Shown piece by piece: positions 20,601-44,600 of a stretch of DNA of 64,000 nucleotides. The stretch comes from Thalia democratica. Its lineage: Eukaryota. The position numbers were made by a program, and so were the translations under genes. Below the pieces are notes generated by a model. That model made no database searches and was not told where the DNA came from. It was given only the letters and a program-made list of their open reading frames with translations. The stretch lies in NCBI GenBank assembly GCA_965202585.1, contig OZ241828.1:15066001-15130000 (forward strand), in the 5' to 3' direction. Every line of letters begins with the position of its first letter. The stretch's first letter is position 1.

Positions 20601-23600
20601 TATTATAACTTTTCTTTAAAATATTTCTCTTATATTTTTAACTTGAGTCATGCGAGCTTATTTTAAAAAGTCACGTAAGACCTTATTAAAGTACTAAAAA
20701 GAACTAATTTTTTTAGATAAGTAGAAAAGTAATTCCATTAAAATAACTAACAGAGCTTCTGGGCTGCGGGGTCTTGAGAACCACCAACGGGATGTTTTCA
20801 TCGTCCGACTCGTCTGAGCTTGACACCAATTCGTTTTCCTTGGTAGATGCGTCTTTAACAGGACTGATCGGTTCTTGTTTGACCAGGAAAGTTTTGTTTC
20901 CAGTCTTGTCTTTGGTGTTTGAATCGCTCGGTACAACTTTAGTGGGACTTATGGGCTCTTGTTTAACTGTGAAAACTGGTATCTTTTTAGTTGAAGTATT
21001 GTCCTTTGGATTGCTCAAAGGCTCTTTCGTTGGAGTTACTGGTTCTTGCTTCACCAAGAAGGTTTTACCTCCAGTAACCGTTTTATCTGTACTGCTTGGA
21101 GCGTCTTTAGTGGGAGTAACTGGTTCCTGTTTAATAGTAACATTAGCATTAGCTATACTTGAAGTATCTTTAGTGACAGTTTTGTCCTTTTTGCCAAGAC
21201 CTCTCGTTTTTCTAGTTCTAATCCTACCTGACGCAATATCTACCACAGCTTTATTATTCGATGCCGATTTTGTCTTTGTTGTTTTGCAGTTGTTATTCTT
21301 ATCTTTAGCTGTGGTCTTAACCTTTTTAACATTGCTTTTTGGTTTGGATAAAACTGGTTTATCTAATACTGGAGTTACTAAAGTTTTAGTTTTTGGCTCT
21401 ATTGGCTCAATTGCTTTCATTGTTGGTTTATCTTTTATTTCCTCTACAATTTTAGCATCGTTACTGGTTGTAATATTTTCTTTTGGCTTTGTTGCTTTGT
21501 CAATCTTAATGTCTTGTGTTTCTTTTCCATCAATATCATTTGAAGTTATTTTATCATTTGCATCCAACTTTACAGGTTCTGAGTTTTCTTCAACCTTTTC
21601 ATCACTAATTTTTACAATCTTCTTATCTGAATTGCTCGTCTCTGTAACAGTTGCTTCAACCTTGGCAGTATCAGCTTCTGCAACTTTCTCTTTTTTTACA
21701 TCTAAAGTTTTTTCAACCGTAATAACATTAGTTTCTGCTGCTTCAACTTTTTTAACATCCGGTTTTTTCTTCAAACAGATCAACGGTTCGTCTTCACTCG
21801 AATCTCCGGAAGTTGAGAACTTCTCAGGAATCAAGTTCGAAGACACCGAGTCGTTGTCTTCGGTGTTGACTGTGGAACAAGGCTCTGACTTGTCAGTGGG
21901 ATTTTCTTCTGTTTGCGCCTTGGTTGAAGGGTACAAGTCTTCGTCGTCGTAAGAAGGTAGGGAGCTTTTAGATGAAACCTTATCACTTTCGTCAGGAAGT
22001 AAAGGATTTTCAGATTTCAAATCTTTAGATGATATTGTTTCAATCTTTTCAGGAAGATTAGATTTTTCTTTGGACGGAACTTTGCCGCTTTCGTTAGGAA
22101 CAACATTCGAACTAGAATCTTTCGATGACGTTGTTTTACTCTCATCATCTAATGAACTTAACTTCTCAGTTGCTTTAGAAGCAAATTCTGTTTCCTCAGA
22201 TTTATCGCGCTCGTCTGGAACAATACTTGAATCTTTAGACGATGTCGTTTCAATCTTATCAGAAACAGAAGTATTTTCATGCTCGGGGTCTTTGGAGGAT
22301 GTTGTTCCAGCATCTGCTAAATTCAACTTCTCAGCGACTTTCTTAGAAACTGGCTCTGTTTGTTTGGATTTTTCAAAATCTTCAGACAAAGCTGCTGTAA
22401 CTTTATGGTTATCTTCAGAACAAACTTTCGAAGGGAAAGAACTTTTGGTTGTGATGTTAGTATCAAGTTTCTCAGATTTCTCTTCTGTAGTACTTTCATT
22501 GTCTTTGGATGAAGGCAAGGAATTTTCTTCCGAGGCTTCAGGAGAAAGCTGTTTTGATAAACAATTTTCAGTTTGTTCAACTTTTTCTAATGTTGTTTTA
22601 GCAGAAAGCGTCTCAGAAACATCCCTTTCTGAAGTGTGTGCATCATTTAATGTTGAAGGTAAAGAAGTTTTAACTGAATCTTTTGGAGAAATGTGATCAT
22701 CATTATTTGTTGGTATACTTTCGGATTGACTTTTAACTTTCTCAACTGTAGGTGTAGGGATTTCATCAGCAACTTCAGATGGTTTGTCAACAGCTGCTTT
22801 TTTCTTATTTTTATTTCTTAAAGTTCTACCTGTAACCTTTTTCAAGTCGTCTTTTGTTGAAGTGTCAACCTTGTCAGACACGGGAACTTTGTCTTCAGCA
22901 GAAACCAATTGATCTTCAGGTAAAGGTTTAAACTCAATAAAAGTTTTAGACGGTTTGTTATTGGCTGTTTGTTTCTTATCTACAGTTTCTAACGAACTAT
23001 CAGACATAGTTTCTGAGGTGTTTTTAGTCATTGCTACAGAGTCAATCTTTACTTCAGCTGTTAATGAAGTTTGGTTGTCTTCTACTTCAAGTACAAACTT
23101 TTTATCAACCTTATCAGCTGATAACTGTTTCTCTAACTCATTATGAACAGGCAAAACATCATTTTCAGAAATATCTTGGTCCTTCACAACATCATTTTGA
23201 GTAGGTTCAGTTTCTTTAGCACATTCAATGACAGTATTAGATTGAACAACTTTCGCTATTTGCATTGGTTCTAAAGGTTCAGGTGTTTCAGAAACAACTT
23301 CAGAATTTTCAGAAACGACTTCAGATTTTTCAGAAGCGACTTCAGATTGCTCAGAGACAACTTCAGATTTTTTTGAAACAATTTCAGATTTTTCAGAAAC
23401 AACTTCAGATTTTTCAGAAACGACTTCAGATTTTTCAGATACAACTTCAGATTTTTCAGAAACAACTTTAGGTGTTTCAGAGACAGCTTCAGATTTTTCA
23501 GAGACAGCTTTAGAGTTTTCAGAAACGACTTCAGATTTTTCAGAAACAATTTTAGGTGTTTCAGAGGCGACTTCAAGTTCTTGGTTGATCTCTTCAGGTT

Positions 23601-26600
23601 GTTTAGAAATTAAAACATCCTTAGTGACATCTTTATCAACTAGATTTAAACTGTCATCAATTTTGCTTGTTCCAACACTACTCTTTACTTTTTCATCAGC
23701 TGTTAAATGTGAAACAGCAACTTTTGGTGGTTTTGAAACACCTTTTGTCACTTTTTTACCTTTTTGTGTATCAACTGTTTTTTTGACAGTTTCTATTTCA
23801 CTTTTTGAAGCTGGTTGTTTGGAAACTTTTATTTTACTTTCATCAGGCTTGTCAGCTTCTTTCTTTTCTTTATGGTGATCAACAACTGTTTTCTTGTCTG
23901 TTTCAACACACTTTGAAACTTCTTCAGTACTTTTAGCTGTTTTTAGTGGGTCAACAGCATTACTTGAAGCTTTACTAGATTTAAAAACTTTCTTTTTACC
24001 TTGAAGAGAACCAGAAACATCTCGTGTAACTTCAGCAGGTTCCTTATTATTTTGATCAAGTGCTTTTTTATCTGCTGCAACATGCTTTGTTGGTACCTTA
24101 TTGTTTTTAGGAATTTGAACGACCTCTTTTGATGGTGGAATCAGTGTTTCTATACCCTCAGCTATCTCAAAATAATCAAAACCAACTTTGGTCATTTCTT
24201 CAGCCATTCTGCAAAGCGGGCCTTTGTTTTTGCCCGTGAAATCCTTTACAGTTTGGTGCAATTTTCTGTTATTTGTACTACTCTTAGGCTTGACAGGTTT
24301 TTTGGACTCTTTTTTATTTTTTAGTGGATCAGGAACAACTTTAGCCATTTCCTTGTTTACTTTGACTGATAAAGCCTTGCCTTTCAGCAGATTAGCTTTG
24401 ATGGTTTTGTTGGGTATTTTTTGCTTGGTAGGGCTGGCCAACAATTTAACAACCTCTTCCTGCTCGGAAGACATGAGCATTTCGAAAACGTTTCTTTTCT
24501 TCACTCCTTTGTTGGTTAACAGAGACTCTTTTGTGGAAGTTTGATCGCTCGTCGGTACTTCTTTAGGCTTCTCACTTATTTTTACCGGACTAGTTTTAGC
24601 TGAAATTTGTCCAGACTCTCTCGGCGGAGACATACTGAGCCTGGCGAACAAGCCCTGATCAGGAACAGACTTTATGCTCACTGAATCTTGTACTTGCTTG
24701 GCCTTTTCCGAAATTTTAACCGAAGCAGCTTTAACACTGTTCTGTTCGAGCATGCTGAGTTTGGCAAACAATCCCTGATCCGAACTAAACTTGTTATCGT
24801 TACGCTTTATGCTATTATTACACTTCAAAGGACTTTTAAGCGCTTCTCTTGCTTTCGAGGCGAAAACGTTCTTCTTCTTGATGGAGTTCTTGCGCGGCCG
24901 CTTGCACTTGGTGGGGCTCTTGCACACGGCCAGGCCCAGGATCGGGTCGGTGACGTCATAGTTGCTCTGCTGACGCGCTTCGCCGGTCACGACGCGCTCC
25001 TTGGCAACGAAACCCTCCGTGCTCTGAATGGCCTGCTTGATCTTGTCCTTGTTCAAGCTTTTCAAGTTCTGGAACAGCTGCTGGGACAAGTTGGACGACG
25101 ACTCCGAGTTGTTGTCGGAGCTTGAACCGAGGAAGGTCGTCATCTCGTGCACTTGCGAGAAAGTGACGTCCAGTTGCTTTTTGGCAGGAACTTCTCCGAC
25201 ACTTTTGCAGGTCGGTTGATTGTTTTGCGCTTCCTGCTCTTTCAAACTGGCGCTATTTTGATTTTTCAAGTCATCTCTATTTAGTTGTTCTGGTAAAGCT
25301 TCAACCGACTCCAAACAGTCCTCAATTGGCACTTTACTTTTCTTCTTGCTAGCGGCATCAAGTGGCAAAGAATCCTTCTTGGCTGTTGTTTCATCCGAAG
25401 TTTTTGAAGGCTTGTTTGTGATGGCTACTAATTTTTTGTCAGATTTCTTTTTAGTAACCTTAGTTTTAACAAGCAAGTCGTCAGTAGACACTTTGCTGGT
25501 CTTTGTAGAACTTTCAACTTTATCTTTCTTGTACTTATCAGAAAGTGGTTGAGCTGTAGCACTTTTGTTTGTATTTTTTGTCGCATTGAGAACTTTTCTA
25601 TCCGCTTCAACATTCTTGCTTGTCACAGAAACAGCAGCGTGACCCACAGCGTTTGCGTCAAAAGCAATGGGGTTTATTTTCTCATTGTTTTCAGGTTTCT
25701 TCTTCACAATCTGGTAGTCGAGAGAGTCGTTGCTCTCAACGTTTTTAATCAACCTCAGAGGAGTCACCGTGTCCTTTTCAAGCTTGTCAGAGTTTTCAAA
25801 CTTTTCCACCAACGTTTTGACGTTAACCACTTTGAAAGGGGTGAACTGGTGACTTTTAATTTCGCCAGAGTTTTCAGAAACATTTGGTGTATTTTTTACC
25901 TCTTTGACTAGTTTCAAAGGAGTGACTGTATTCTTTTCAACATTATCAGAAACATTATTGACTGTTTTATCAGCGAAAGACATGTTTATTTCGTTTTGCA
26001 CAATTTGGTCTGTCATTTCATTCAAAGTGATACTGACATCCAATTCGGTCTCTGCAATTTGAGACTCTTCTACAGTTGGTGGATTGTTGGACTTTTCAGA
26101 TCGAGTTTTAGCAGAATCAGCAAATTTGGTAGCTTCAGGTGTTCTTACGTCGTCAGGCTTGTCTGTCACAGCTGTTTGTTCAAACTTATGGGAAGCTTCT
26201 TTCTCAATTTTACCTGAATCAGACAAGTCTTTACCAGGCGAAATCTCCGCACTATTGTCTGAAACTTTAGGCTTGGAGCGCAGTGTTTTCTGAGGACTAA
26301 CTTCATTTTTATTTGAAGCAGCCTTGGAAGGCTGTTTTTCAGACAAATCAGACTTGGTTTTACTGACATCAGTATTTTGAGACTTTTGTGGTTTAGAGAC
26401 TGCTGAAGGCTGTGTGACAGTCAAGTTAGGCTTTTTAGTTTCAGATTTCGTGTGCTCAGACTCTGAAGGCTTCTTTTTGCAAACGTGCCCTTTTGGAGCC
26501 TCTTCAGCAACTATCTGTTTAGGAGAATGTTGTTTTTGAAGATTTTCCAAAGAATGCTTCTCAGCAGGTTTGTTCTCCCTGACTTTTGAGTCATTGTTAA

Positions 26601-29600
26601 CAACTTTTTGAGGCTTGTTCTCAGGCAAATCAGACGTTTTAAAGCTGGTTTCAGTTTTTGTTGACTCAATTTTTTCTGAAGGTTTTTTGCGAAGTTCCGT
26701 AGTAGTTTTAGAGCTTTCCACATCCTTTGACAAAGAATTTTCAGGCTTGGAAGGACCTTCAACGTTCTTCTCCTGAGCAGTCTTTAAAACTACTTCTTTT
26801 CCTTCAGAACCACTGGACTTCTTGCTGGTATTTTTGTCCTGAACACTAGAAGATTTCAAGTCTTCGTGCTGTGACATGCTCCTCGTTCTAGATCTTGACC
26901 GCCTTTCACTTCCAAGTTTTCCTTTCGAGCCAGATGAATCACCTTTTACTCGAGATCTACCTCTTTCGGAAGCAACGGGTTTAGTGACGCTTTTCTGGCC
27001 CTGCCTCGTCCTTGAAACAGACCTGGATCTGGTCTTTTGCAGGCGACTGGATTTCAGGTCTGTTTTGGTCACTAACTTATTAATCAAAGAGCCGCTTCTG
27101 CTGCGAGTAGCGGTTTTAGCACTAGGCCCAGTAGGTTTCGACTCAATTTTTTTCTTGTAGTTTTTACCTGTCTCAAGGCAAATATCCGGCTTTTTCGGGT
27201 CAACTTCCACAGCCTTCTCCGAAGAGCTGTTGGAGTTGGAAGAATTCGATTGTGAGTCGAATTCCGGTAACTGATCAACTCCCAGCCTTTCATCAATTTT
27301 TTCCTTGTTGACCCTGTCAACCTCTTCAGCGTTATTTTTGTTGCCTTCCTCGCAAACGCTCTGCCGCGTTTGGCTCCTCGTCCTCTTCCTTTTCATCCTC
27401 TGCTGTTCCTCCTTCTCCTTTTTTATCTCCAGACTGATCCTCCTTTTGGTGGCCTCCAACTTCTTTATGTAATTCGTCTTTTCGGGACTTTTCGCTTTGA
27501 AGCTCTCAATTTTTTTCTCCAGCTCCTTCTCCATTTCTCGTTTTTTGAGAATTTCCCTCACTCGTTCGGTGTACTTCAAACTTTTGTCTGTTTCAGCTTC
27601 CCCCACCACGACCGAGCCCTTTTCTATCTGGCTTCTCGTCGATCTGGTCCTGGGAGACGTCGGCGCGAAACTTTCTGCGAGCTTCTTCCTACTCTTAGGG
27701 TTGTTTTCTCCCGAGCCGTCGAAAAATTTGACGCTCTTCTTGGGAGAAACACCTTTTTTAGGAGAAAATTCAACCTGATTTTTCTTTCTGGGGCTTTTTC
27801 TTGTAGGATTTTTAGAGCTTGCTTCGGAAGATTTTTCCTGCAACTGATCAATACCCAGCCTTTCGTTTAATTCTTTTTTATTTTTGTTACTTTCTTCGTC
27901 ATCTGTGTTTTGGGCGTCCAGTTCTTTTCTGTTGTAGTGGTAGGTCTTCCAATTTCTGAAGAACTTCCTACATCTAGACATCCTGTTTAAAAATTTTAGT
28001 AATTAGTACATTTTATATTTTCAAAGTTTTACTTAATTGTATAGTTTTAGACCTAAATCTATTTGATAATTAAACGTATATATAAACCATGTTTTTTTTC
28101 AAAGTTTGTTAACTATAACAACAATTAGATTATATAGACAAAATAAACAAATTAATAAACAGCTATATAGCTTATATTTAAAGCTAAGTTGAAATAAACA
28201 AAAAAAATTATAAAACACAAGTAGTTAATATATATTATCAGTTATGAGCTAGGATTAGTATAAAGAGTTTTTTAACAGTTTGCCCATAGCAAAACTAAGT
28301 TTTAATTATTCGTAAGTGTGGAGACCTAAGGAGACTTTTATTAAACAATTTGAGCTAATTTTGAATGAGAAGATATTTAGATATAAATTCAAAATAAAAA
28401 AGTATTTACACAACTTTTACATTTCTTACACTTAGATTTTTTCTTGATTAAGTCAATAATTGTCCAAAAAACTTTAAGTTATGACGTCAGCAAACTGAAA
28501 TGTTTGAAATATAAAATTCGTTTTCAAAGTTTTTTGTTTCAATTAGTTTTACTTAAGGCTTTGTGTTGAACGTTTTTTATTTTTGTGTCTATTTGGAATA
28601 CAGTTTAGCTTTGTGTGTTTTAAGATAGGAAAAATGTCGTTCAGAAGACTCAAAATTAATTCGGAGAATCCAGTTTTGAAGAGTTTGATCAAAACCGAAA
28701 AAGATGAACTGACTTTAATGGCTAGGTTTAAATTTCAAGACAATTTTAAAAACTTTTTATCTTTTTTGCATAAATTAGCATACATTAACATCTTAGTTAA
28801 GCATAATATTTTTTTTAATAGTAAATATTGAATAGTTTGGTTTTGGTACTGGTTTTAATTAAAAAGTTTAAACATAACTGACTCATTTTCAAAAAAAAAG
28901 TTTATTTATTAATTTCGTTTAGCTCTTTTCAGAATAACATTGCTAAAAACTATGAATATTGTAGAGTAATTTTAGTTATATATAATGAATTTGAAAAGTC
29001 TAACAAAAAATAGTTACGTCATAAAGAATAAAAGTCTGTTTAGAAAAAGTTTGAAAAATAGAATAGAGCTATACTGAACTAACTTAAAGTAATTTATAAG
29101 ACAAAATTGCTAAAACAAAAACATTTAAAATAGTATAAATTTTTACCTTAAACTAAATTAAATAAAAAGCACATTAAAAATACGACAATAACAACAACGA
29201 AAAATAATACTACTAAAGACCCTATTTGTAAAGTTTTAAATTGTAAAAATCTCTTTGTTTGCAAATTTTTGGCTCGCGAGATCTAATAAATAGAGATTCT
29301 AGAACTGAAAGATGGTAGGTGTTTCTAGCTCGGGATAGGATTTCGAACCTATTATCCAGGTAGTTCTCGGCACAAACAGGGTTGTTGAGGAGGTGCTGAT
29401 TTTGTCTTATAAATTACTTTAAGTTAGTTCAGTATAGCTCTATTCTATTTTTCAAACTTTTTCTAAACAGACTTTTATTCTTTATGACGTAACTATTTTT
29501 TGTTAGACTTTTCAAATTCATTATATATAACTAAAATTACTCTACAATATTCATAGTTTTTAGCAATGTTATTCTGAAGAGAGCTAAACGAAATTAATAA

Positions 29601-32600
29601 ATAAACTTTTTTTTTGAAAATGAGTCAGTTATGTTTAAACTTTTTAAGTAAATATTGCATTATTGCATTGCTTTTTTATTCTGTTTGTCTGATTTAAAGC
29701 TTGAAAATATACTTTGCAGTTTCAGCTCTACGAAAATCAAACCTAAAAATGAGAAAAAGAAAGTCAAGCAACAAGAAAAAGTTTGTTAAGACTTATCTGT
29801 TTTGATCAGTTTACGAGTTAAACTTCAAGTTATTCTAGAAGCCGTATTACCTTCATTATTTTGGTCAATTTCAAATATTCAAGTGACAATACTTGATAAG
29901 TAAAGATTTATTAAAGCTTGTTTATCCAACTGTTTCTAAATTTGTTTATACCAAGGTCATTGTTTTGCTTATTATTACAACTTTTGAAAATTGCTATTAC
30001 AACATAAATAATAATAAATAATACAAGCTTTTGACAAAAAACAGACATATGCAGTAGATACAAAATTTCTACTTTTCCAGGTGTTTGGAAACCCGAAAGC
30101 TATTAGACTGATTCAAAGTATATCACAGCAATCAAACAGGCATGTTAACCACAACAACAAGAAAATAAATAAAATCACGAAACTTGACAAATTAAACAAA
30201 AAATTAAATAATCAAGTTCCACAAGTTTGTAGCGGTCCTTTAAACAGCGGTAGAGTTAATACAAAAGTAAGAAGCTTGCACAAGTTAACGTCGGCTATAA
30301 AGTTGAAGTTTAGTGATCAAAACATTAATAAGAAAAAAGTTACTTGGGTAGACCAAGTTAAAGGATCGAGCATTGCAAAGTAAGTTTAAATAATATTTGG
30401 TAAATTATAGGCAAAACACTTTGAATTTTGACTTAAAAATATAGATTATCTTTTATTAGTTAACATCTTACGCTTTATACTTTATTTATAGTAGATACAG
30501 AATAAAAGATAAGAACTTAATATATTTTATTTTAACTTGATTTTTTTTAGTTATTTATTAATAATATGTATTAACTTTCTTGGTTTATTTTTTAATTTAG
30601 ATACAGTACGATGATTTACGACCACAAATTGAGGAAGTTCAGAGAACAAAACGAAAACGAAAATATTGACGACATAACTACGACTTCTACTTTTCATTGT
30701 AATTGCAGGTAAAATTAAAATATTCCATGTTAAAATATTAGTTAACAAGAGATTTCAAAAGAGTTTGTTTCTCTATTTTTATACAAATTTAAAACATTAA
30801 AGAGTATGTACTTTCTGTTGTCATTCAGATAAAAGCATTTGAATTAATTTGGCAATTAACCACAATTAATTTTACTAATTTTTGTAAAAGAGTAACAGTT
30901 TTTTTAAAGTTCTGTACTAGTGTGAAGCTTATATCACATTGGATAAATTTAATTTATAAACGAATTTTTTCCGTTGTAATTCAGGTAAAACCTTATTGTG
31001 ACTTCTGCGCCAATTTATCACGAAAGTTTATTATGACATCACTAATGAAACATTGAGTCATAACTATTACGTCATAGTAAACGTTGTGCCAACCGAGTGC
31101 ACTTTAAGTTGTTTGTCGAGCAAAAACTTAATAAATTGAACAAATACTCGTATCTAATTAAATCTTGACAAACAAGTCAACTTAGTTTTCGTTTAAATTA
31201 CTCTTTAATTTTCATTAAACATGGTCAAATGTCATATAAGACTTATTGAATTGATAGATAAAATAGTTTTTTTTTTTTAATTCTTGAGATAAGTTTTGTA
31301 TCATTGTTATTATAATTTAATTTTCAGAGACATAAGAGAATGTCCATTGCAAGGCAGCTGTTTGTCGAAAAACATAAAGTTCAAGATAAAAGTGGAGAAC
31401 AACAACCAAGTTAAAACTTTTTACGGAACATGCAAGAACTCTACTTTTAAGAGCAGGTTCTATCAGATCAAGCATTTGATGAAAAATAGAAATATGACGT
31501 ACATGAATCCATTTGCGAGGTTAGTAAAAAAAATTATATATTAAACTTATGTCCATTTGCAAGTACAAGCTATGTGCTGTTATGTTGATTTTTACTGGTA
31601 AGTTGTTGTTTATTTGCTTAATTAATATTACTTGATGAAAAATTGAAGTATGTCGTACATTAGTCCATTTCAAGGTTAGTAATATTTAAGTATTTTTAAT
31701 ATAATAGCTTTCATATACTTCTTTGCAAGTTGAAATATTCTGTTCATTTTTCCTTGTAAATTTTGGTGAGTTTGCAAGGTTGGATGCAGTTTTTTGCAGT
31801 TCAAAATTACAATTACCAGGGAACCTTTTTCAATTAAAACCATAACAATAACTGTTTAAACGTTATCCAACTTTGTTGTTTGTAATGTAGCATTTGATCA
31901 AAGTTGGTGGTATTAGAGCGTTTTGCAGGGTAAATATTTCAAATTTGTTAAATTTCCACCATGATGAATGAACTTTTTCTTCAAGGTGTGCTGTAATTAC
32001 GAGGTCGTATAGGTGGGTTGAACTTTGAACGTTCAAAATGTTGACAGTTTGTAAAAAAAATAAGAAGTGTGTGTTATTGGTGTTTTAAATAAAAATAAAT
32101 AAACATTAACTCGTTTACAAGGTAGTCAATTGTACTTTTAGTTGGGTGCTTAAACTTTTGGTTTACAGTATTAAAACTGAGGAAAAGGACATTGTTAAAA
32201 CTAAATTATTTTATACATACATTTAAACTTAATCAATTTATGAGATAAACCATGTATAATGTATTGTAAATATGTGTTAATATGCTGTTGAGTCTGTATT
32301 TAGTTTTAGCTGTTTTTTTTTTTTGTAAAATTAGCTAAAAGCTATTTTCAGTAGGAAAAGATCAAAGAGTTTGTAATTGTGTAATTATGGTTTTGAAAAC
32401 TCATAATGTGTTTACAAACAGACAAAAAAGCCATTAACTCTCTCTAATCTACATCTCACACGTAAAAGGTGAAAACTTCACTTTTACAACAAGTTCAGAC
32501 AAAAAAAAATCCTACATAAAAGTTTGCTAACTTAACAAAGTTCAAGTAAACTCTAAACATAGCAACTTTGAAAAACTTCAGTATATTTATGTCTAAAACC

Positions 32601-35600
32601 TCTAAATGACCAAGTTTAAAAACCTAAATACTTATATATATGTTACTAAAAAAACAACATAAAAAAACAAGTAAATAAATTAGTAAGTAGTGGCTGTATC
32701 TTTAACAGTTGATAAAACATTTATAATCTGACGTACAAGACAATGTAACTTTTTATATAAATAATTCATGGGAGATTTAAAACAATTTCAGCCAAGTAAA
32801 TGGGTTTATTCAATTTGTTTCTTTTTCATAAGAAACTTTTCCTTCATTTTTAAATTATTTATAAACAACAAGATTTGGTTGGGGAAACTTTGAATAGATT
32901 TAGTAACTGGCCAAAATTTAAAATAAAACAACAAAATTTATCGACTTTAATAGCGACTAAAATAACTTTGAAGCTTATCTTAGAAATGAAACAGTTTTTT
33001 TTTTATTATAATTTTAAATACTTATGTCCAGCCTAAAGGCTTTTATCTAAATAGGGAAGTTTTAAATAGAAATTTTTATAATTTTAAAAGGCAAAAAATT
33101 ACATTGAAGAAACTATAAATTGATAAAAATCAATTAAAACTTAAATTTGATGATAACTAAATTTTCAATTTTATTTTCTTATATAAAACAACACTTTAAA
33201 ATAAAATAAATTGTTTTTGGTAAAATCTAAAATTCCTAATTCACAATTTCTATACTGAAACACATATATATTTAAACCTTATTATTTTAAGTCTATCAAA
33301 GACGTGGTATAAAAATAAAAGCAGCAAAAATAAAACAAACTGGTAAATAAACAAACTTTGTAAAAACAATGAACTTAGTTAAACAAACAAAATTGCCACG
33401 AGTTTTGTATGTAAACTTTAAACGAGCGAATAATTAGTATTTGCAAAACAAATAAATAAAAAAACACGAGTTAACTGGATTACTAGTTGTTAAATTCTTA
33501 GTTTAACTTATGATTTTAAATAAAAAACGGGTTTTATACATAAAATTATTTAAAATTTTACAAACAACCCAAACAAGTAATTTTTCGTTGAAACACGCAG
33601 ACTCAATATTGACGAAATAAATAAAAAGTCGGATTTACAAACTTAATTTTAAGAAGTAAATTTTCGGATTAAATTTTTTTCAACAGAATTATAAACAACT
33701 CAGAAAAAATTGTTTAATTTTTATACGTTACCCAAAACAAATAAACAAAAAACACGAGTTAACTGGATTACTTGTTAACTTTAAGAGAAACTTGCAGACT
33801 TTTTAATAAAATAATTAATTTTATACATAGAAATTATCAAAACTTTACAAACACCCAGAACAATTTGTTTTCCCTAAAAAAAAAATTCGATATTGAAAAA
33901 TAAATAGAAAATTGGATTTTACAAACTTAACTATAAGAAGCAAGTTTTCGGTTTAAAATTCTTTTCAACACAGTTATAAACAAGCAAAATTCGTTTAAAT
34001 TTCAACACGTAGACCAATAGGTTACAAAGAAGCGCAACTCGATACTACTCAAATTTCAGCAAAATTACTCAAATTTCAACTAACTAACGGGCAAAACGTT
34101 TTTGCTTTGTAAATAAATTCAAGTTAGTTCACACGCCAGGCGCAAAGTTTAAATTTGAACTATTTTATATTACTTAGCAAAAAACAATTTTTGGTTTAAA
34201 CAGCAAACTAAATAAAAACTGAGTTCAGCTGTTAACATTTAAAAGCAGATTAATAAAAAGTTAACAAAACAAAAATATAATGCATTTCAGCTCGAAAACT
34301 TGCCTAGTATTAACAAATCTATTCAAATTTGCTAAAATAAATTATTAAAAAACATTTGATTATAAGTAAGTTGTATAAATAGGAGTATGATATGTAGAAA
34401 CTCTATAAAATAAATAAAAAAGTAATTTATAATTTCAGTTGTTCTGCTTTGCTTTTTGTTTAATTATTTCTGTTTAAAACCTCAAAATGTTATCCAAAAA
34501 GTTTACTCAAATTTTGTCACGAGTGAAAAATATAAACTACTTGCTCATAACAAAATTTGTTCAAAGAAAGAAGTCTGTTAGTCGGATATAAAACAAACAG
34601 AGTAATTTAGCTTTTTCTGTTTGGTAATTTAGTCGCAAATAAGTGACACACAAGTCTCTTATTATCTTGCCAGCCAATTTCGTCGAAACTTTAAGAATTT
34701 ATCGATTCTTCAAGTTTCGACCGTTATATTGTTTGTCGTGGTTTCAGTTGTTAGTTACTTTTTTAGCTGTTTTTATTTGTTTCTTTTTATATGATTACTT
34801 TTGCATGTAAAAATGATGGTTTATCTTTTGTATGACTACTTTTTCCGAATATGTAAATTTGCAAAAGATAATTAACACAATCTTAAGAATACTTACATAA
34901 CTTTCTTTTAATCATATTTTTAATGTATAAAACCTAAAATTCAAAAATAAAAATGTTAACGTTTTAAAAGGTCAGGCTAATACATTACAGTTTGGTTTCA
35001 GTTTCATTTTGAGTGTGATTAATGTATATGCAGCTAGGTTAACTTTGTTTATTTACTCATTTATAACAAACTTTAATGACAGTATTTTCGTTTGTCAGCA
35101 TATAACGGTTTAAGTTTAAACCAACAAATAAATATATTCTATACTGGTAAAAATATACATTTTTTTAATAAAAACTATGATAATAAAACAAAGCGATTAA
35201 GACTTTACAACAGATAACCAACTATTTAACTGTTAAACCTATAAAATAAAAAACAAATTAAAGTTTCAACTTTTAAGCTTTAGTAACCAACCGCAAAAAT
35301 TTCAGTATTCATAACTCAAAACAAATAAAACACTAAGAAGTTTTATAGATAGACTTTAAATATATTTTACTTATACTAAAAACTAGCAAATAAGTTTTGT
35401 AACAAAAATAAACCAATTTTTCTTACATAAATTTCAAACCAAAAGTTCAAACTAAACTCATAGAATTCTTAATAAATCAAAAGCTTAACAAAACTTCTTT
35501 AAACTTTTCTTACTTAAATACACTGAAAGTTTGAAACCGGTAACTTTGTATTGAGTGTGTATAGAGAAAAAACGAAAAGTTTCTCTTGGTAATTCGAGAC

Positions 35601-38600
35601 TGTTACGTCATAGTTGACTTAAGTGAGAGAATTGCCGATTATATAGCATTGTGTGTGTGCGAAATTTTTGGTGAATAGTTTTCAAAATTATTTTTTAGGG
35701 AAAATATGAAGTGTATATGTGTGAACTGTAATTCACTGGGCTAAATTATTATCAACAGTATTGCTTATTAAATTGACTTAAAATACGTGAAACAAGCACT
35801 TTCAAACATAAGTCACTAAAATATAATACTTGTGTGTGTGTGTGTGTAATTCGCAAGGATTGTTTGACATTAACTTATTATGACCCTTGTAAAGTTTCCT
35901 GAATGGTAGTTTATGAGTTGTTTAGAGTCTAAATGTCAACAACATTTGTATGTTAAATATATATGTAATATTATTTTACTATTGTGTGTGTGTGTACTTG
36001 AAAGCCTTTTTTGTTTCTTCCATAAATAAAACTTTTTGATTTATCAAAAACGTCTCATTTAAATTGAATAATTAATATAATTAGTACGAGTTACTGGTTT
36101 GTTCCATAATATTCATGTAACAAAAGCTAAAAAATAATATTGTGTGTTAACAAGTAACTAAAATTTACTTTCTAGATTATTTTAACGTTGCTTATGGTTT
36201 ACTATCAACTTTAAAACTGACTTTATGCCAAGTGATTTTAATTTTTGTGCATAAATATGGTTGAAAAATAGAATTAAACTTTTTATTCTATTTGAATAAT
36301 TAATATAACTAATACGAGTTACCGGTTTGGTTTAAAATATTTGTGCAACAAAAATTAAAAAATAGTTATGTGTGTTTATAAGTAATTAAAATTGACTGTT
36401 TCACACTATTTTAATGTTGCTTATGGTTTACTATTAGTTTTAAAACTGACTTTGTGTAAAGTGGTTTTTGTTTTTTAAATGTTTATGGTTGAAAAATAAG
36501 ATTATAATTTGCTAGCCAATGTGTGTGTCTCTTTGCGAATCAACCTTAAATTGACCCTATATTGCGAACTTAATAAGATATTGTTTGCGTTGTATTATTT
36601 TAAATTTTTCCTGAGAAAATGAGTGTTAAATATAAGTAAATTTGTGTAAAGAGTATTTCTTTTACTAAATAAATTAAGTTTAAACAGTTGCATTTCAAAA
36701 ACCAATAATTTAATCCTCTTTGAACAATGCAATTCTGTGAAAACGTAAAATTTAAGCGCTGCGTAACTTGATACGGCGGAAAATTACTGTTTAATATAAG
36801 TTCCCGCGTTTCAATACACAAAGCTGCAATTTATATGTGAGAGAAACTTTTTTTGGATAAAAGCTTTGCTGAGTTTAAGTATTTTTTTGCCTCTATCAAC
36901 ATTATTCTAACAAAACTTTAAAGTTTATTTATGTTAGGTTTTGACTTGTTACTCATCTTTGAATTACTGTCAAATGTAGCATCATATTTACTTCAATTCT
37001 TGTTTATATGTAAATACGCATATATGCTAATGCTTTGTTTGATAAAGTCTGCTTAGTGTTTTAATTTTGAATTCCTTGACGCTGAAATCAAGTTTTCATT
37101 AAATTTCATGAAGTATTTTGTAATATTTTCATTTACAGCAGCGTAGTAGAGACTTTAATGTTGATTGAAATAAAAAAAGGTAAATGTTCCGGTTTTAAAG
37201 TCTAGATAACTTAAACATATGTAAATGAAAAATAACTTATGTCTAATCGTAAGCTTAAATTTATATCTTGTTAAAAGTTTTTTGCGATTTTGTTAGCGCA
37301 AATTAAATTCAAACATTTTTATGTTTGAACATTGTTGCTGTTTAATTAGAAGTTATTTTGGGCTAAAGTTTTTGAAAACTAAGGTTTAAGAAAAATTAGT
37401 AAATTGCAGAATTAAATTAATTATTCTATAACTTATTTGATCGCACATCACTGATAAAACATACTTTAATAACCCAATTATCAAGCTAGATATAATATGG
37501 TTAATAAGTTAATAGTGGTTGTTAAATTATTTATTTAAGTCTCACTGATTTTTTGACTTCATCTGAACAGTTTAGTTCGCAATATTTGGCCTTTCAAAAC
37601 TTTTTGTGAAATTAATTTTTAAATTTAACTTTTTTTTTCTAGATACATCTGGAAACTTAAAAGGAAGAAGGAAAGTTTCGACGTGCAGTACAGAGTGGTT
37701 GACCAGCCTGCAGTCAGCACAGGTAGTAGTGGCAGCAAGAAATCGTGTTCGTGCAGAGTCAGAGTGAGCGGAAAGACAAGCAAGAAGGTGAAGAAATAAG
37801 AAGGGCAACAGTGGAAATTTTGTTCTTGTTTTTTTTTATTTGTCTAATATTTAGAAGTTAGTAACTTGAAAACAATAAAATGTAAAAAAACTGAAATTTA
37901 TTAACTTATGATTGCAATTAGTATGTTAATATTTTTATATATTTTATCTATTACATATTTATAACAAATACATAATGTTTTAATACAAAAAACATTCTGT
38001 AAATTTAAATAATCAGTGACTACTAATTATGAGTTAGAAAACTTAGATTGGTATAAGGTATTAGATCTTATTAAAAATTATTTAACAACCAAATAACAAG
38101 CTTAATAATACAAATTTAAAAACCTGTCGCCTTTTATCATTTATAATTCTAAAAAAACTTGAAATTATTATTTTAATTCACTAATTGCTAATAAATTAAT
38201 ATATTTTATTGTTTTTATATTAATCAAAGTAAATATTCAATATAACTTTTAAATACTAATTGTTAAACGAGTTCAGTTTAATGGTTATGCATTGAATGTT
38301 GCAAAACAAAAGAATAAAATATTTTATAAGCAATACAACATTTTTTCAACATTTATTACTGAAATATCATTTAAGCAAAACACAATCTGAAGCGCCTTAC
38401 TTAAAAGCCAAGCGTATAAACTAAGAAAACTTTGAAAACAAAACTGCAATCGAGTTTTATTTTTAATCAGCTCACTACCTGCAGCACGATGACACGAAGA
38501 AAAGTTTGCTTAAAAATATAATACATAATGGTAAGTTTACAAACTACTTGTAACATAAAAAGTTCTTCTTCCTTTTTAAAAAGTAGGCGTGCAAAATTTT

Positions 38601-41600: not shown

Positions 41601-44600
41601 ATCATCTTTACTATTTGTTTTAAATAATCTATTTTCATTTATTTTATTTGGTAAATGACCAACTGATCGCTTTCAATTAATTTATTTTATTATCATTGCA
41701 CATACCTCAAACACCAAAGAGCCTTGTGGTTTTTAGCGAAAACGTCATCGTCGACCTTATTGTTTCGCTTCGACCTCATCGAAATTCTTCCTTGCACCTG
41801 ATTGGACGAATTTTTCTTGGAGCTCCTCTCGAGCAACAACATCTGTTCGAATTTCAAATGCTACACATTTGCGTACAAAAAATGTGGGTTAGCGTGGGGT
41901 TTTGACATGCTTTTTATAATAATTTATAACTACATTTATTTATATTGATTAATCTACAGCATAACATTAAATACTACTCATAAGGGTAATGTTCAAATTT
42001 TAAACTCTACATTGATATTTGTAAAAAATAGATTGGTTAGCGTCAGTTTTCACCATGCTTTTGAGTTACTATATAGATTTATTAATACTTTAGCTAGTTA
42101 CAAAAATAAATACTACAACTTACCATAAGTTTTGAATTTAAAATTCTAAATTGAAGGTTGTACAAAAAAAATTGGTAAATATAAGGTTGTACAAAAAAAA
42201 TTGGTAAATATAAGGTTGTACAAAAAAAATTGGTAAATATAAGGCTTAAACATTCTTTTTATACTAACTTACATTACATCTGTAGTAAAACATTACAACT
42301 AGGTATGATGCTCATTTGTCAATAAAAACTTACACAAAAAATATGGTCAATGTGTTTTTAGTATGGTTTAATGTTGAAACAAGACTGCAAATACAGTCAA
42401 TATTTTGTTTTTAAGAAATTTGATCTAACAAAATATATAAAAAAAAGCTTATTATGATGGATGACTTATTATGGATGACTTAAATGTGCATATTGATGTT
42501 ATTGTTCTCAAAGTAAAGCAATATAAAATATTCAACTAAAAATTTACAAAAACCTTTTGGTATATCAGGGTTTAGCAATTTATAACCATGCATTCATACA
42601 TTTATCAACACTTGTATAAATTCTACTTTAGAATTTATACAAACTATTTGGTTACTGTGGTTTAGTAATTTGATATACAAGCATGTATATAATTACAGTT
42701 GCTACATTTTCCCATGCATTTTTTAAGTATCTTGTTCCTTGCAATTATTTTAGAACTTTAAATATAGCATGGGAGTTAAGATTTCAAACTTTTAAATTAT
42801 ACACAAAAAAAATATTAGTCAGAGGGATTAAGTGACTTGTTTTGAAAATATAATTTGTTTAGTTTTAAAGCTAAAAAATTTTTTTTTGAAATAACGCATG
42901 AAAAAAATCCTTACAATAGCAACATATTTATGATGTTTTCAATTGTTTTAAAGGTAGCAAACGAGAAAAAATACTGAAAAAATACTAATATTGATTCTAT
43001 TCCTCAAACTTATTAAGGTTTAATATCCATGAATAAAAACCATACAAATTTGATAAACTAAATGAACACCAACATTAACTCTAATCCTCAAATTTAATAC
43101 TTCAAAATCTTCCAAACAAATTCAATTTTAAAAACTATTATTTTTTAAACACTTACATTGACTTTATTCCTTAAATTTTTGATAGTTTCGTTTCCGGCGA
43201 ACAAATAGAAATCGTCGTTCATTTGAAAGTCACCACATTTGTAACAGAACAGCGTCTGATCGTCCACGTTCATCATAATGGCGTGACCCGACTGTTTGTA
43301 GTGGTCCAACGCGTGGTTCTCAATGTACCTATGAAAACATTTACACAATTCAACAAAATTTCTGTACATAAGTAAATTTTAACTACCTATGTAATCTGTG
43401 GAATAAGTAATTGTGTCATGTATATGTGTGTATTAAGATTAACTATTATAGGGTTTAATTGCCAGAATGTGTGTAATGGTCCAATGCATGGTTCTCAATT
43501 TGTCTCTGTATATGTTAAAATTAATTAAATTTGTACTTAAGATGTACTTGAAGGTTTTGTTTGTGTTTATTTTTTGTTGAATACAATGTGTTCATTTTCA
43601 TTTTTATCATTGTATGTCTAAGTGGCTCAGGTTTTGATGCCTGAGTCCGACATTGCACAAAAACAATATAATAAAAAAGTTAAAACACTGATCAAAATTT
43701 GTTTCTATAAGTAAAAGGCTATTGAAAGTATTCATTCAGTTCAAATTCCATATTTCTTTATTATTAATAGAGGTGTAATTAAGAAACTATTTGGCACTAG
43801 ATTGGTTATGAATGAAAAATACTTGCAGTATCCTTTAACAACTTATTTACCTACAGATACATCATTCAATGATTTTAATCCACATTTAGAGGATACTTTA
43901 ACTTTCGACTACTTAACAATTATACAAAGTTCTTATCAAAATATAACTTTTTAGGTATTAAAGTACTTTAGTTCGTAAAACTTAGTTTGTTATTTACAAA
44001 ATAAAAAGCAAATATAAAGCATTATGACATTGCATTTTTACAAGTTTCAAATAAATAATGTGTCATACAAAACAAATAACATGAGAATGCAGTGGTTTTT
44101 CCAGCATTTCGTTATTTGCAATGCAAATGAGTGGGAGTTAGTATGGTCGGTGATACCAGTTTTATTGCTTGTATTTCAACTACTGCTGAAATAAACATGT
44201 TACACTTTCCATTTGTTGATTTTCATATGCAATTTAAAACTGTTTTTGATGTAAAAAAACTTTTCTCATGTAAAGTTGTGTCTTTTTTCTGCCTATTTTG
44301 CTAAAATCTGTAGTTGAATTTTTCTGTGCTTATGTTACTACTTCTGTACCAACTTAAAAATATTTAATTCATTTATAAATGTAACATTAACTCATGATCA
44401 TGACCGAAAAATATTTACTATCAGACATTAAATAAATTCTAAAACACTCAGTCTATCTTAATAGAAAGAAAACTTAATTTTTGAATGCTAAAATGTACTT
44501 AAACCAACTTTCTGTAACTTAGACTTAAGGCCTTTTTTATACAATTTAGACAAACAATTAATTTTTAAATAAAACTTTACATACTCCATGTAAGTATTGA

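Follow-up and report, generated by a model that had tools for sequence, protein, structure and literature searches.

A spliced gene of Thalia democratica that probably derives from the endonuclease part of a Penelope-like retroelement and has almost certainly lost nuclease activity

The question raised by this locus is whether coding sequence that resembles the GIY-YIG endonuclease of Penelope-like retroelements, but has lost several of its expected catalytic residues, belongs to a host gene, where it came from and what its product could do. The locus lies in a stretch of 64,000 nucleotides from Thalia democratica (GenBank assembly GCA_965202585.1, contig OZ241828.1, positions 15,066,001 to 15,130,000 of the forward strand), which is called the window below and to which all positions refer. 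The initial annotation, made from the letters of the window alone, had proposed that positions 30330-37799 may encode a catalytically dead nucleic-acid-binding module that recruits protein phosphatase 1 (PP1) through an RVxF-type docking motif, KVTW. Penelope-like elements are an ancient class of retroelements related to telomerase, and both the domestication of transposable-element proteins and dead derivatives of enzymes are well-known kinds. The best explanation of the locus is that a host gene was derived from the C-terminal part of the open reading frame (ORF) of a Hydra-clade Penelope-like retroelement. A probability of about 0.78 was assigned to this explanation as a whole, that is, to a domesticated dead endonuclease whose product would bind nucleic acid without cutting it.

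A splice model was built from the raw window sequence on the plus strand. It joins six coding exons at 28634-28725 (with the start codon at 28634), 29720-29780, 30081-30379, 30601-30708, 31328-31519 and 37643-37799, separated by five introns that all have GT..AG borders and of which the last is 6,123 nt long. The product has 302 amino acids (aa), an isoelectric point of 10.3 and a Lys plus Arg content of 22%. Transcripts L004 and L001 each align to the window in six blocks, and the block ends agree with the exon borders, including those of the last exon 6 kb away. For L004 these blocks are 28544-28731, 29728-29782, 30079-30382, 30601-30708 (91% identity), 31322-31519 and 37641-37858. From the transcript alignments the 5' untranslated region reaches back to at least 28544 and the 3' untranslated region extends to at least 37863.

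In a search of sequencing runs, parts of the locus were present in three marine metatranscriptome runs and in DNA runs from two organisms, and the marine metatranscriptome sources agree with a planktonic animal. Contigs of the runs were aligned on window positions 28600-34599. One contig of RNA run X2 (record 6) contains exon 1, then about 56 unplaced letters, which is the size of exon 2, and continues directly at 30081, where X2 contigs start. A second X2 contig stops precisely at the exon 3 donor at 30379, and exons 4 and 5 are also covered by other RNA contigs. The junction between exons 5 and 6 is supported by transcripts L004 and L001 and by a loose end in the RNA contigs of X2, in which GCGAG is followed by GTACATTTGGAAACTAAAGAGAAAG and which corresponds to this junction in a close relative. 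The locus at 28634-37799 on the plus strand is a real, transcribed and spliced host gene with six exons. The residues named in the initial annotation are all present at their places, but the stretch 30330-37799 comprises only the last four exons, because it starts at the codons for KKKVTWVD within exon 3 and ends with the stop codon; exons 1 and 2 are located upstream of it.

Exon 3 encodes a basic N-terminal region that was modelled with low confidence and has the KKKVTWVDQVKGSSIA block at its end, with the RVxF pattern match KKKVTWVDQV at 30330-30359 (+). Exon 4 encodes 'KYSTMIYDHKLRKF', an acidic linker and the first two Cys of a zinc knuckle (CNC), and exon 5 begins with the third and fourth Cys (CPLQGSC). 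The knuckle HCNCR/DIRECPLQGSC is thus divided by intron 4 into two halves at 30695-30708 and 31328-31361 (+). After the knuckle, exon 5 encodes strands 1 and 2 and the first helices of a degenerate GIY-YIG core with the motifs IKF, FYG and FKSRFYQIKH (NIKF, 31371-31382; TFYG, 31416-31427; TFKSRFYQIKH, 31443-31475; all on the plus strand). Exon 6 contributes the YIWKLK helix and strand 3 (FDVQYRVV), and ends with a Ser/Lys/Arg tail that includes a C-x-C remnant before the stop codon.

A full HMMER scan with 63 residues encoded by exon 5 yielded two near and two distant relatives. A word-based search starting from P0002 (299 aa) led to P0018 (300 aa), and a further word-based protein search with the family profile revealed no more members. 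The family as treated here has five members, namely the window protein and P0018, P0002, P0003 and P0005, which are 85%, 70%, 31% and 24% identical to the window product, respectively. The four database members derive from uninterrupted transcript contigs of about 1 kb. For database and structure work the exon pieces were used, and P0018 served as a stand-in for the window protein.

Comparison of the whole coding sequence of the gene with that of L004, the transcript of the orthologue with 85% identity, by the Nei-Gojobori method gave a synonymous divergence (dS) of 0.90 and a nonsynonymous divergence (dN) of 0.076, and thus a ratio of 0.085 (Fisher p 4e-38). The ratio was 0.04 for the knuckle and core, 0.037 for the motif and linker region, and 0.17-0.2 for the N-terminal 125 residues. 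Relative to L001, the synonymous sites were saturated. Among the listed exon differences, 10 of 11 in RNA run X2 and 10 of 12 in DNA run X6 were synonymous, and one silent difference in the closer relatives affects the codon right after KVTW. These comparisons show that the gene is kept under strong purifying selection in several species. In DNA run X6 the exons had a depth of 100-350, the same as the adjoining introns, and a Penelope fragment in intron 1 had a depth of about 100,000. There was no paralogue within the window, and by read depth the gene is apparently single-copy in the related DNA.

The origin of the gene was indicated by the weaker HMMER matches, which, together with 145 relatives of one of them, were C-terminal pieces of retroelement ORFs. 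In these ORFs a reverse transcriptase (RT) thumb and a Lys/Arg cluster are followed by the motifs [IV]x[WY][FY]NPP[FY], FL.L.DKHFP and K.SYS.M..I..HN.K.L, and then by CxCX5C..C, a GIY-YIG core without Cys between GIY and YIG, CxLCL.EK, LN.R.E and C.H. The combination of CxCX5C, absence of Cys between GIY and YIG, CxxC-E and N..CxH is the description given for the Hydra clade (Craig, Yushenova, Rodriguez and Arkhipova 2021, PMC8557442). The knuckle of the window protein, C-N-C-R-D-I-R-E-C, fits CxCX5C, and no Cys is present between IKF and FYG. When a profile of the four database members was compared by hhalign with a profile of 20 element ORFs, a match with a probability of 99.3% (E 1.4e-20) was obtained, which covers the knuckle and continues through the core as far as strand 3. 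Element ORF P0027 matched exon 5 of the window in a tblastn search (E 4e-6). Element ORFs that included the thumb region matched in the window only exon 5, and no RT was present in the 302-aa product or its transcripts.

Pfam gave no matches with the four exon pieces or with P0018, P0002, P0003 and P0005, and its GIY-YIG model appeared below threshold with element ORFs only, the best being P0027 (E 5e-4, 20.7 bits versus a cut-off of 22.6 bits). A sequence search of the PDB with element ORF P0004 returned no matches. Rfam and tRNA scans of the window also gave none, so that no hammerhead motif of an element was recognised.

In an unrooted tree the five family members were separated from the elements by one split (support 97/98). 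A deletion of about 40 residues between two N-terminal blocks and a C-terminal truncation are common to the family. The single split and the shared deletion of about 40 residues therefore point to one domestication, followed by long divergence. Like the endonuclease module of the Hydra clade, the window protein has the CxCX5C linker knuckle with a fourth Cys and no CCHH finger between GIY and YIG, and the order of blocks is the same (basic cluster, [IV]x[WY] strand, K.SY.M, knuckle, strand-strand-helices-strand). In contrast to a Hydra-clade element, the gene has no RT and lacks the approximately 40 residues that comprise NPPF..FL.L.DKHFP. Its YIG Tyr and its His are replaced, the CxxC-Glu, Asn and CxH are gone, and it has five spliceosomal introns, is apparently single-copy in related DNA and is under purifying selection.

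The loss of catalytic residues was determined column by column in a comparison of the five family members with 44 Penelope-element endonucleases. The four knuckle Cys, Pro-Leu, the Gly of YIG and Phe-Lys are kept in the family. The Arg found in 98% of the elements is kept in four of the five members and is His in P0005. The Tyr of GIY (95% of the elements) is Phe in the window protein, P0018 and P0002, and Tyr in P0003 and P0005. The Tyr of YIG is present in 44 of 44 elements, but is replaced by Phe in all five members, and the His at Arg+4 (100% of the elements) has become Ile in the window protein and in three of the database members, and Leu in the fourth. The second half of the element domain, with CxxC, Glu, Asn, Arg, Glu and C..H (95-100% of the elements, and 98% each for the residues after CxxC), has no counterpart in any of the five members, because the family proteins end there or become a Ser/Lys/Arg tail. 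P0003 and P0005 end directly after the third strand, and the other three run into the basic tail, whose C-x-C (in frame at 37743-37760 in the window) is located at the place expected for CxxC. A conserved acidic residue able to replace the metal ligand was not found in the family, and remnants of the lost C-terminal half were found neither downstream of the stop codon nor in any frame.

As the YIG Tyr, the His and the metal-binding half with Glu, Asn, CxxC and CxH are lost, the protein cannot cut DNA by the GIY-YIG mechanism, and from the alignment the nuclease is almost certainly dead. The state of the elements is taken as ancestral and that of the family as derived, because the residues concerned are common to the elements and all other GIY-YIG nucleases. 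The description of the product as a dead module from a Penelope-like GIY-YIG endonuclease with a kept zinc knuckle is thus borne out by the table of 44 elements and by the profile match at 99.3%.

One apparent remnant was rejected. The out-of-frame exon 6 sequence GRRKVSTCSTEWLTSL resembled GGRVCDLCLTEKLTIL with an E of 0.2 in a 1-kb search, and was judged a chance match from this value and because its distance from YIWKLK is wrong. The same sequence lies in an ORF of 53 codons at 37606-37767 (+), in another frame of exon 6, and is faintly like CxLCLTEKLTIL of the elements.

Structure predictions were made for an element ORF and for the stand-in protein. The model of element ORF P0064 had a mean predicted local distance difference test score (pLDDT) of 77, with more than 95 in the core. 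It matched the catalytic domain of I-TevI over 90 of 92 residues with a Z score of 9.0 and a root-mean-square deviation of 2.4. T4 EndoII (7.3) and UvrC (6.0) followed, and these three matches scored well above the following rows. The AlphaFold2 model of P0018 had pLDDT values above 90 at about residues 190-275, where a strand, a strand, three helices and a strand were predicted. The best three of 48,161 chains compared with it were I-TevI (Z 4.7, 65 residues), Hpy188I (4.3) and EndoII (4.3). A Foldseek search against the PDB gave no match at an E of 0.001 or below, and the top of its list was occupied by T4 EndoII and UvrC. The N-terminal region is loosely conserved and has two predicted helices. 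Like the solved GIY-YIG structures (I-TevI 1ln0, T4 EndoII 2wsh, UvrC 1ycz and Hpy188I 3oqg), the domesticated domain is predicted to form a three-stranded sheet with helices. It differs from these nucleases in that only about 65 of the 92 residues of the I-TevI catalytic domain are matched, that four of six catalytic positions are gone and that the Pfam GIY-YIG model is blind to it. The P0018 model contains neither the Asn nor the helix that bears the Glu.

The window protein, P0018 and P0002 share the identical sequence KKKVTWVDQV despite saturation of the synonymous sites between them, and the two distant members have RNGVRWIDEE (P0003) and KFRVTWRDER at this site. Invariant in all five are the V, the W, a D at W+2, a Q or E at W+3 and a Gly a few residues on. 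The initial annotation had suggested that KVTW may derive from the KVSY motif of the elements, and this derivation was not upheld. A profile alignment of the N-terminal parts placed the KVSY-S-M of the elements opposite 'KYSTM', 14 residues downstream of KVTW, and placed KVTW opposite the element block [KR][KR][IV]x[WY][FY]NPP[FY]; with an E of 0.01 this alignment is modest, and it is colinear with the strong downstream match. In the same hhalign comparison of N-terminal parts, 'KYSTMIYDHKLRKF' of exon 4 is the counterpart of the element block KVSYS-M..I..HN.K.L. The block homologous to KVTW reads RKRKVTWFNPPF in element ORF P0053 and RSRKITWFNPPY in P0090, and one element ORF reads KVTW. By this alignment, KVTW is a descendant of the block formed by the basic cluster and [IV]x[WY][FY]NPP[FY], not of the KVSY block.

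In the P0064 model this block forms a three-residue beta-strand of a folded subdomain, whose adjoining helix is deleted in the family, and a second short strand is located at the KVSY block. The natural structural reading of the models is that both partner strands would have been kept, with a short Gly turn in place of the intervening helix. The KVTW stretch had a pLDDT below 40 in the P0018 model, with an alignment only four sequences deep behind it, and according to this model is probably disordered. The invariant V-x-W-x-D-[EQ]..G block may be either an inherited structural strand or a docking peptide. In the elements themselves, the block that runs from the basic cluster through [IV]x[WY][FY]NPP[FY]..V.TN[IV]G..FL.L.DKHFP is very conserved (P0012, P0053, P0064, P0090 and other ORFs). 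It lies between the RT thumb and the endonuclease linker, and its role seems undescribed.

According to the preferred explanation, the C-terminal part of the retroelement ORF would have become a host gene that kept the Lys/Arg cluster and the two short blocks around the deleted residues. The CxCX5C..C zinc knuckle and the first two-thirds of the GIY-YIG fold, consisting of two strands, three helices and the third strand, would also have been kept. The product would be a nuclear nucleic-acid binder without nuclease activity, as we infer from the parent family. Binding would occur via the knuckle and the remaining GIY-YIG surface, in which Phe-Lys-x-Arg is kept, to DNA recognised by the parent endonuclease, which for an enzyme of the Hydra clade would mean (TA)n or AT-rich sites. 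Insertion into (TA)n is seen in nearly all Hydra-clade families and is suspected to be determined by the linker knuckle (PMC8557442). A binder that does not cut would act either as an adaptor, via the V-x-W-x-D-[EQ] peptide, or as a competitor of Penelope elements.

A possible partner in the adaptor role is PP1, the phosphatase proposed in the initial annotation. In that case the basic cluster, KVTW and x-D-[EQ] would dock PP1 via its RVxF pocket, and the dead module would bring PP1 to nucleic acid. The element strand would have become an RVxF peptide after the change from FNPP to x-D-[EQ], which would make the product a chromatin- or nucleic-acid-targeting subunit of PP1. Judged from sequence, the docking and this history are both doubtful. 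The pattern applied was [RK]-x(0,1)-[VI]-{P}-[FW], with two stricter forms. The pocket residues V and W are invariant in all five members, as are the D at W+2 and the downstream Gly, and the x-D-[EQ] after W is new compared with FNPP of the elements. The window protein, P0018 and P0002 match the strict forms and P0005 the loose form, but P0003 (RNGVRW) has no basic anchor and fails the pattern. The V-x-W core is present in five of five members and the pattern in four, so that a lack of conservation, which the initial annotation had named as refuting its idea, was not seen. The flanks are basic before and acidic after KVTW, as has been described for true RVxF motifs (PMC3792071), and four of the five members have Ile-Ala at W+9/+10, where human PNUTS, which has TVTW, carries a hydrophobic pair (PMC10731240). 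The low pLDDT of the segment is in agreement with a docking peptide, but the alignment behind it is shallow. Moreover, at the homologous block the loose pattern is already matched by 11 of 21 element ORFs, so the match is inherited, and because the block is a beta-strand in the element model its conservation may be structural. Shuffled versions of the lysine-rich window protein contained a match in 52% of cases for the loose form and in 23% and 9% for the stricter forms. The gene product resembles PNUTS-like RVxF regulators in K-V-T-W, the basic N-flank, the acidic C-flank, Ile-Ala at W+9/+10 and a probably flexible context. It differs from them in that the motif was inherited from a folded retroelement block and is not strict in all members. 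The PP1 reading is neither supported nor refuted by these data, and we regard it as rather unlikely.

For the competitor role, the dead endonuclease would occupy insertion sites or DNA intermediates and block target-primed integration of Penelope-like elements. This is a tentative possibility. The parts thought to give target recognition are kept, including the linker knuckle that has been tied to (TA)n targeting (PMC8557442), and the catalytic parts are lost. The related DNA run contains Penelope-like repeats in extreme abundance and one such repeat is located in intron 1, purifying selection is strong, and such a protein would resemble truncated transposase repressors. However, the proposal is purely inferential, the abundant elements may belong to a clade other than Hydra, and in an arms race rapid or positive evolution would be expected at the binding surface; the very low dN/dS of the core (0.04) therefore somewhat disfavours such a role. 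It is hardly credible that the locus is a piece of retroelement that is decaying or became exonised by accident and has no function itself. It does probably lie within a long intron of another gene, in antisense orientation and amid repeats, and its catalytic residues are lost. Yet the frame is intact over six exons with a dN/dS of 0.085 at a dS of 0.9, there are full-length orthologues with open frames at 85% and 70% identity, as well as homologues of the same architecture at 24-31%, and the gene is transcribed and correctly spliced, so that the selection and orthologue data already contradict decay. It is also very improbable that the protein still cuts through a rearranged active site, made up for example of the retained Arg, the conserved His located two residues behind the lost one, and a Tyr at the second YIG position. 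Four of the five members do have the Arg, all have a His at Arg+6, and P0003 and P0005 have retained the GIY Tyr. Against this, no conserved acidic residue takes the place of the metal-binding Glu, P0003 and P0005 end after strand 3, and the Glu helix and the Asn are absent from the P0018 model. PDB titles list point mutants of UvrC with Tyr-to-Phe and Asn-to-Ala changes at the equivalent sites. Truglio et al. reportedly found in 2005 that these mutants abolish incision.

Several points weigh against the domestication of a Hydra-clade endonuclease as the best explanation. The tree is unrooted and the family branches are long, so that long-branch attraction may inflate monophyly. Copy number was judged from the related DNA run X6, and the relatives are all transcript contigs. 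The N-terminal 125 residues evolve faster, and their origin could not be recognised. Taken alone, the structural match of the domesticated domain is weak (Z below 5), and it becomes meaningful in combination with the sequence relationship. That the protein would bind DNA, be nuclear and prefer (TA)n is read from the parent family.

Domesticated or truncated transposon proteins that bind DNA without catalysis exist, an example being the KP repressor of the P element. The present gene is similar to KP-type proteins in that only the DNA-recognition part of a mobile-element nuclease or transposase remains and is maintained by the host or the element, but here the source is the endonuclease of a Penelope-like retroelement. 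No host gene derived from such an endonuclease was described in the literature searched, and no exapted Penelope ORFs were found in the rotifer Adineta vaga (Arkhipova et al. 2013, PMC3846280). The gene has retained the zinc knuckle of the linker together with those two-thirds of the GIY-YIG fold that are non-catalytic, and has discarded all chemistry. It could therefore serve as a natural separation-of-function variant for what the knuckle and core recognise, and the role of the linker in (TA)n targeting would be directly testable. If the V-x-W-x-D-[EQ] peptide docks PP1 or another partner, it would be a short linear motif that arose from a folded strand of a mobile-element protein.

The window is AT-rich, with about 24% G+C, and has no assembly gaps. 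On the minus strand, an open exon of 2,422 codons (7.3 kb) at 20713-27981 encodes a Ser/Lys/Glu-rich sequence with a run of short VSEKSE-type repeats, and a splice acceptor is located directly before its first ATG. A zf-UBP exon at 43148-43369 (Pfam, E 1.2e-10) lies 15 kb upstream on the same strand, and together the two exons resemble one USP44/49-like gene. Because the domesticated gene sits antisense between them, it is probably nested in an intron of this USP44/49-like gene.

A repeat search revealed a truncated Penelope-like insertion at 28854-29652 in intron 1, outside the coding sequence. It has inverted arms of 254 nt that are 99% complementary and spaced by 291 nt, and its sequence, the one present at a depth of about 100,000 in X6, also occurs in marine RNA runs. 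This insertion is separate from the domesticated gene. The repeat search also revealed, at 31632-31680 (+), an intronic duplicate (87% identity) of the last 39 nt of exon 5 with its GT donor. It is located 156 nt downstream of the original (compare 31476-31525) and forms a decoy or pseudo-exon end, in which MSYISPFQ is followed by GT. X2 contigs of a relative aligned to this copy instead of the true exon 5 end and then continued into exon-6-like sequence. By eye, a degenerate exon 4 end with a donor-like GT was noticed at 30955-30990 (GTTGTAATTCAG followed by GTAAAACC, compared with CATTGTAATTGCAG followed by GTAAAATT at 30708), which would be a second decoy of the same kind. The last intron, of 6.1 kb, contains two-copy tandem duplications at 33446-33983 (period about 287 nt) and 36048-36510 (about 228 nt), whose copies are 71-89% identical.

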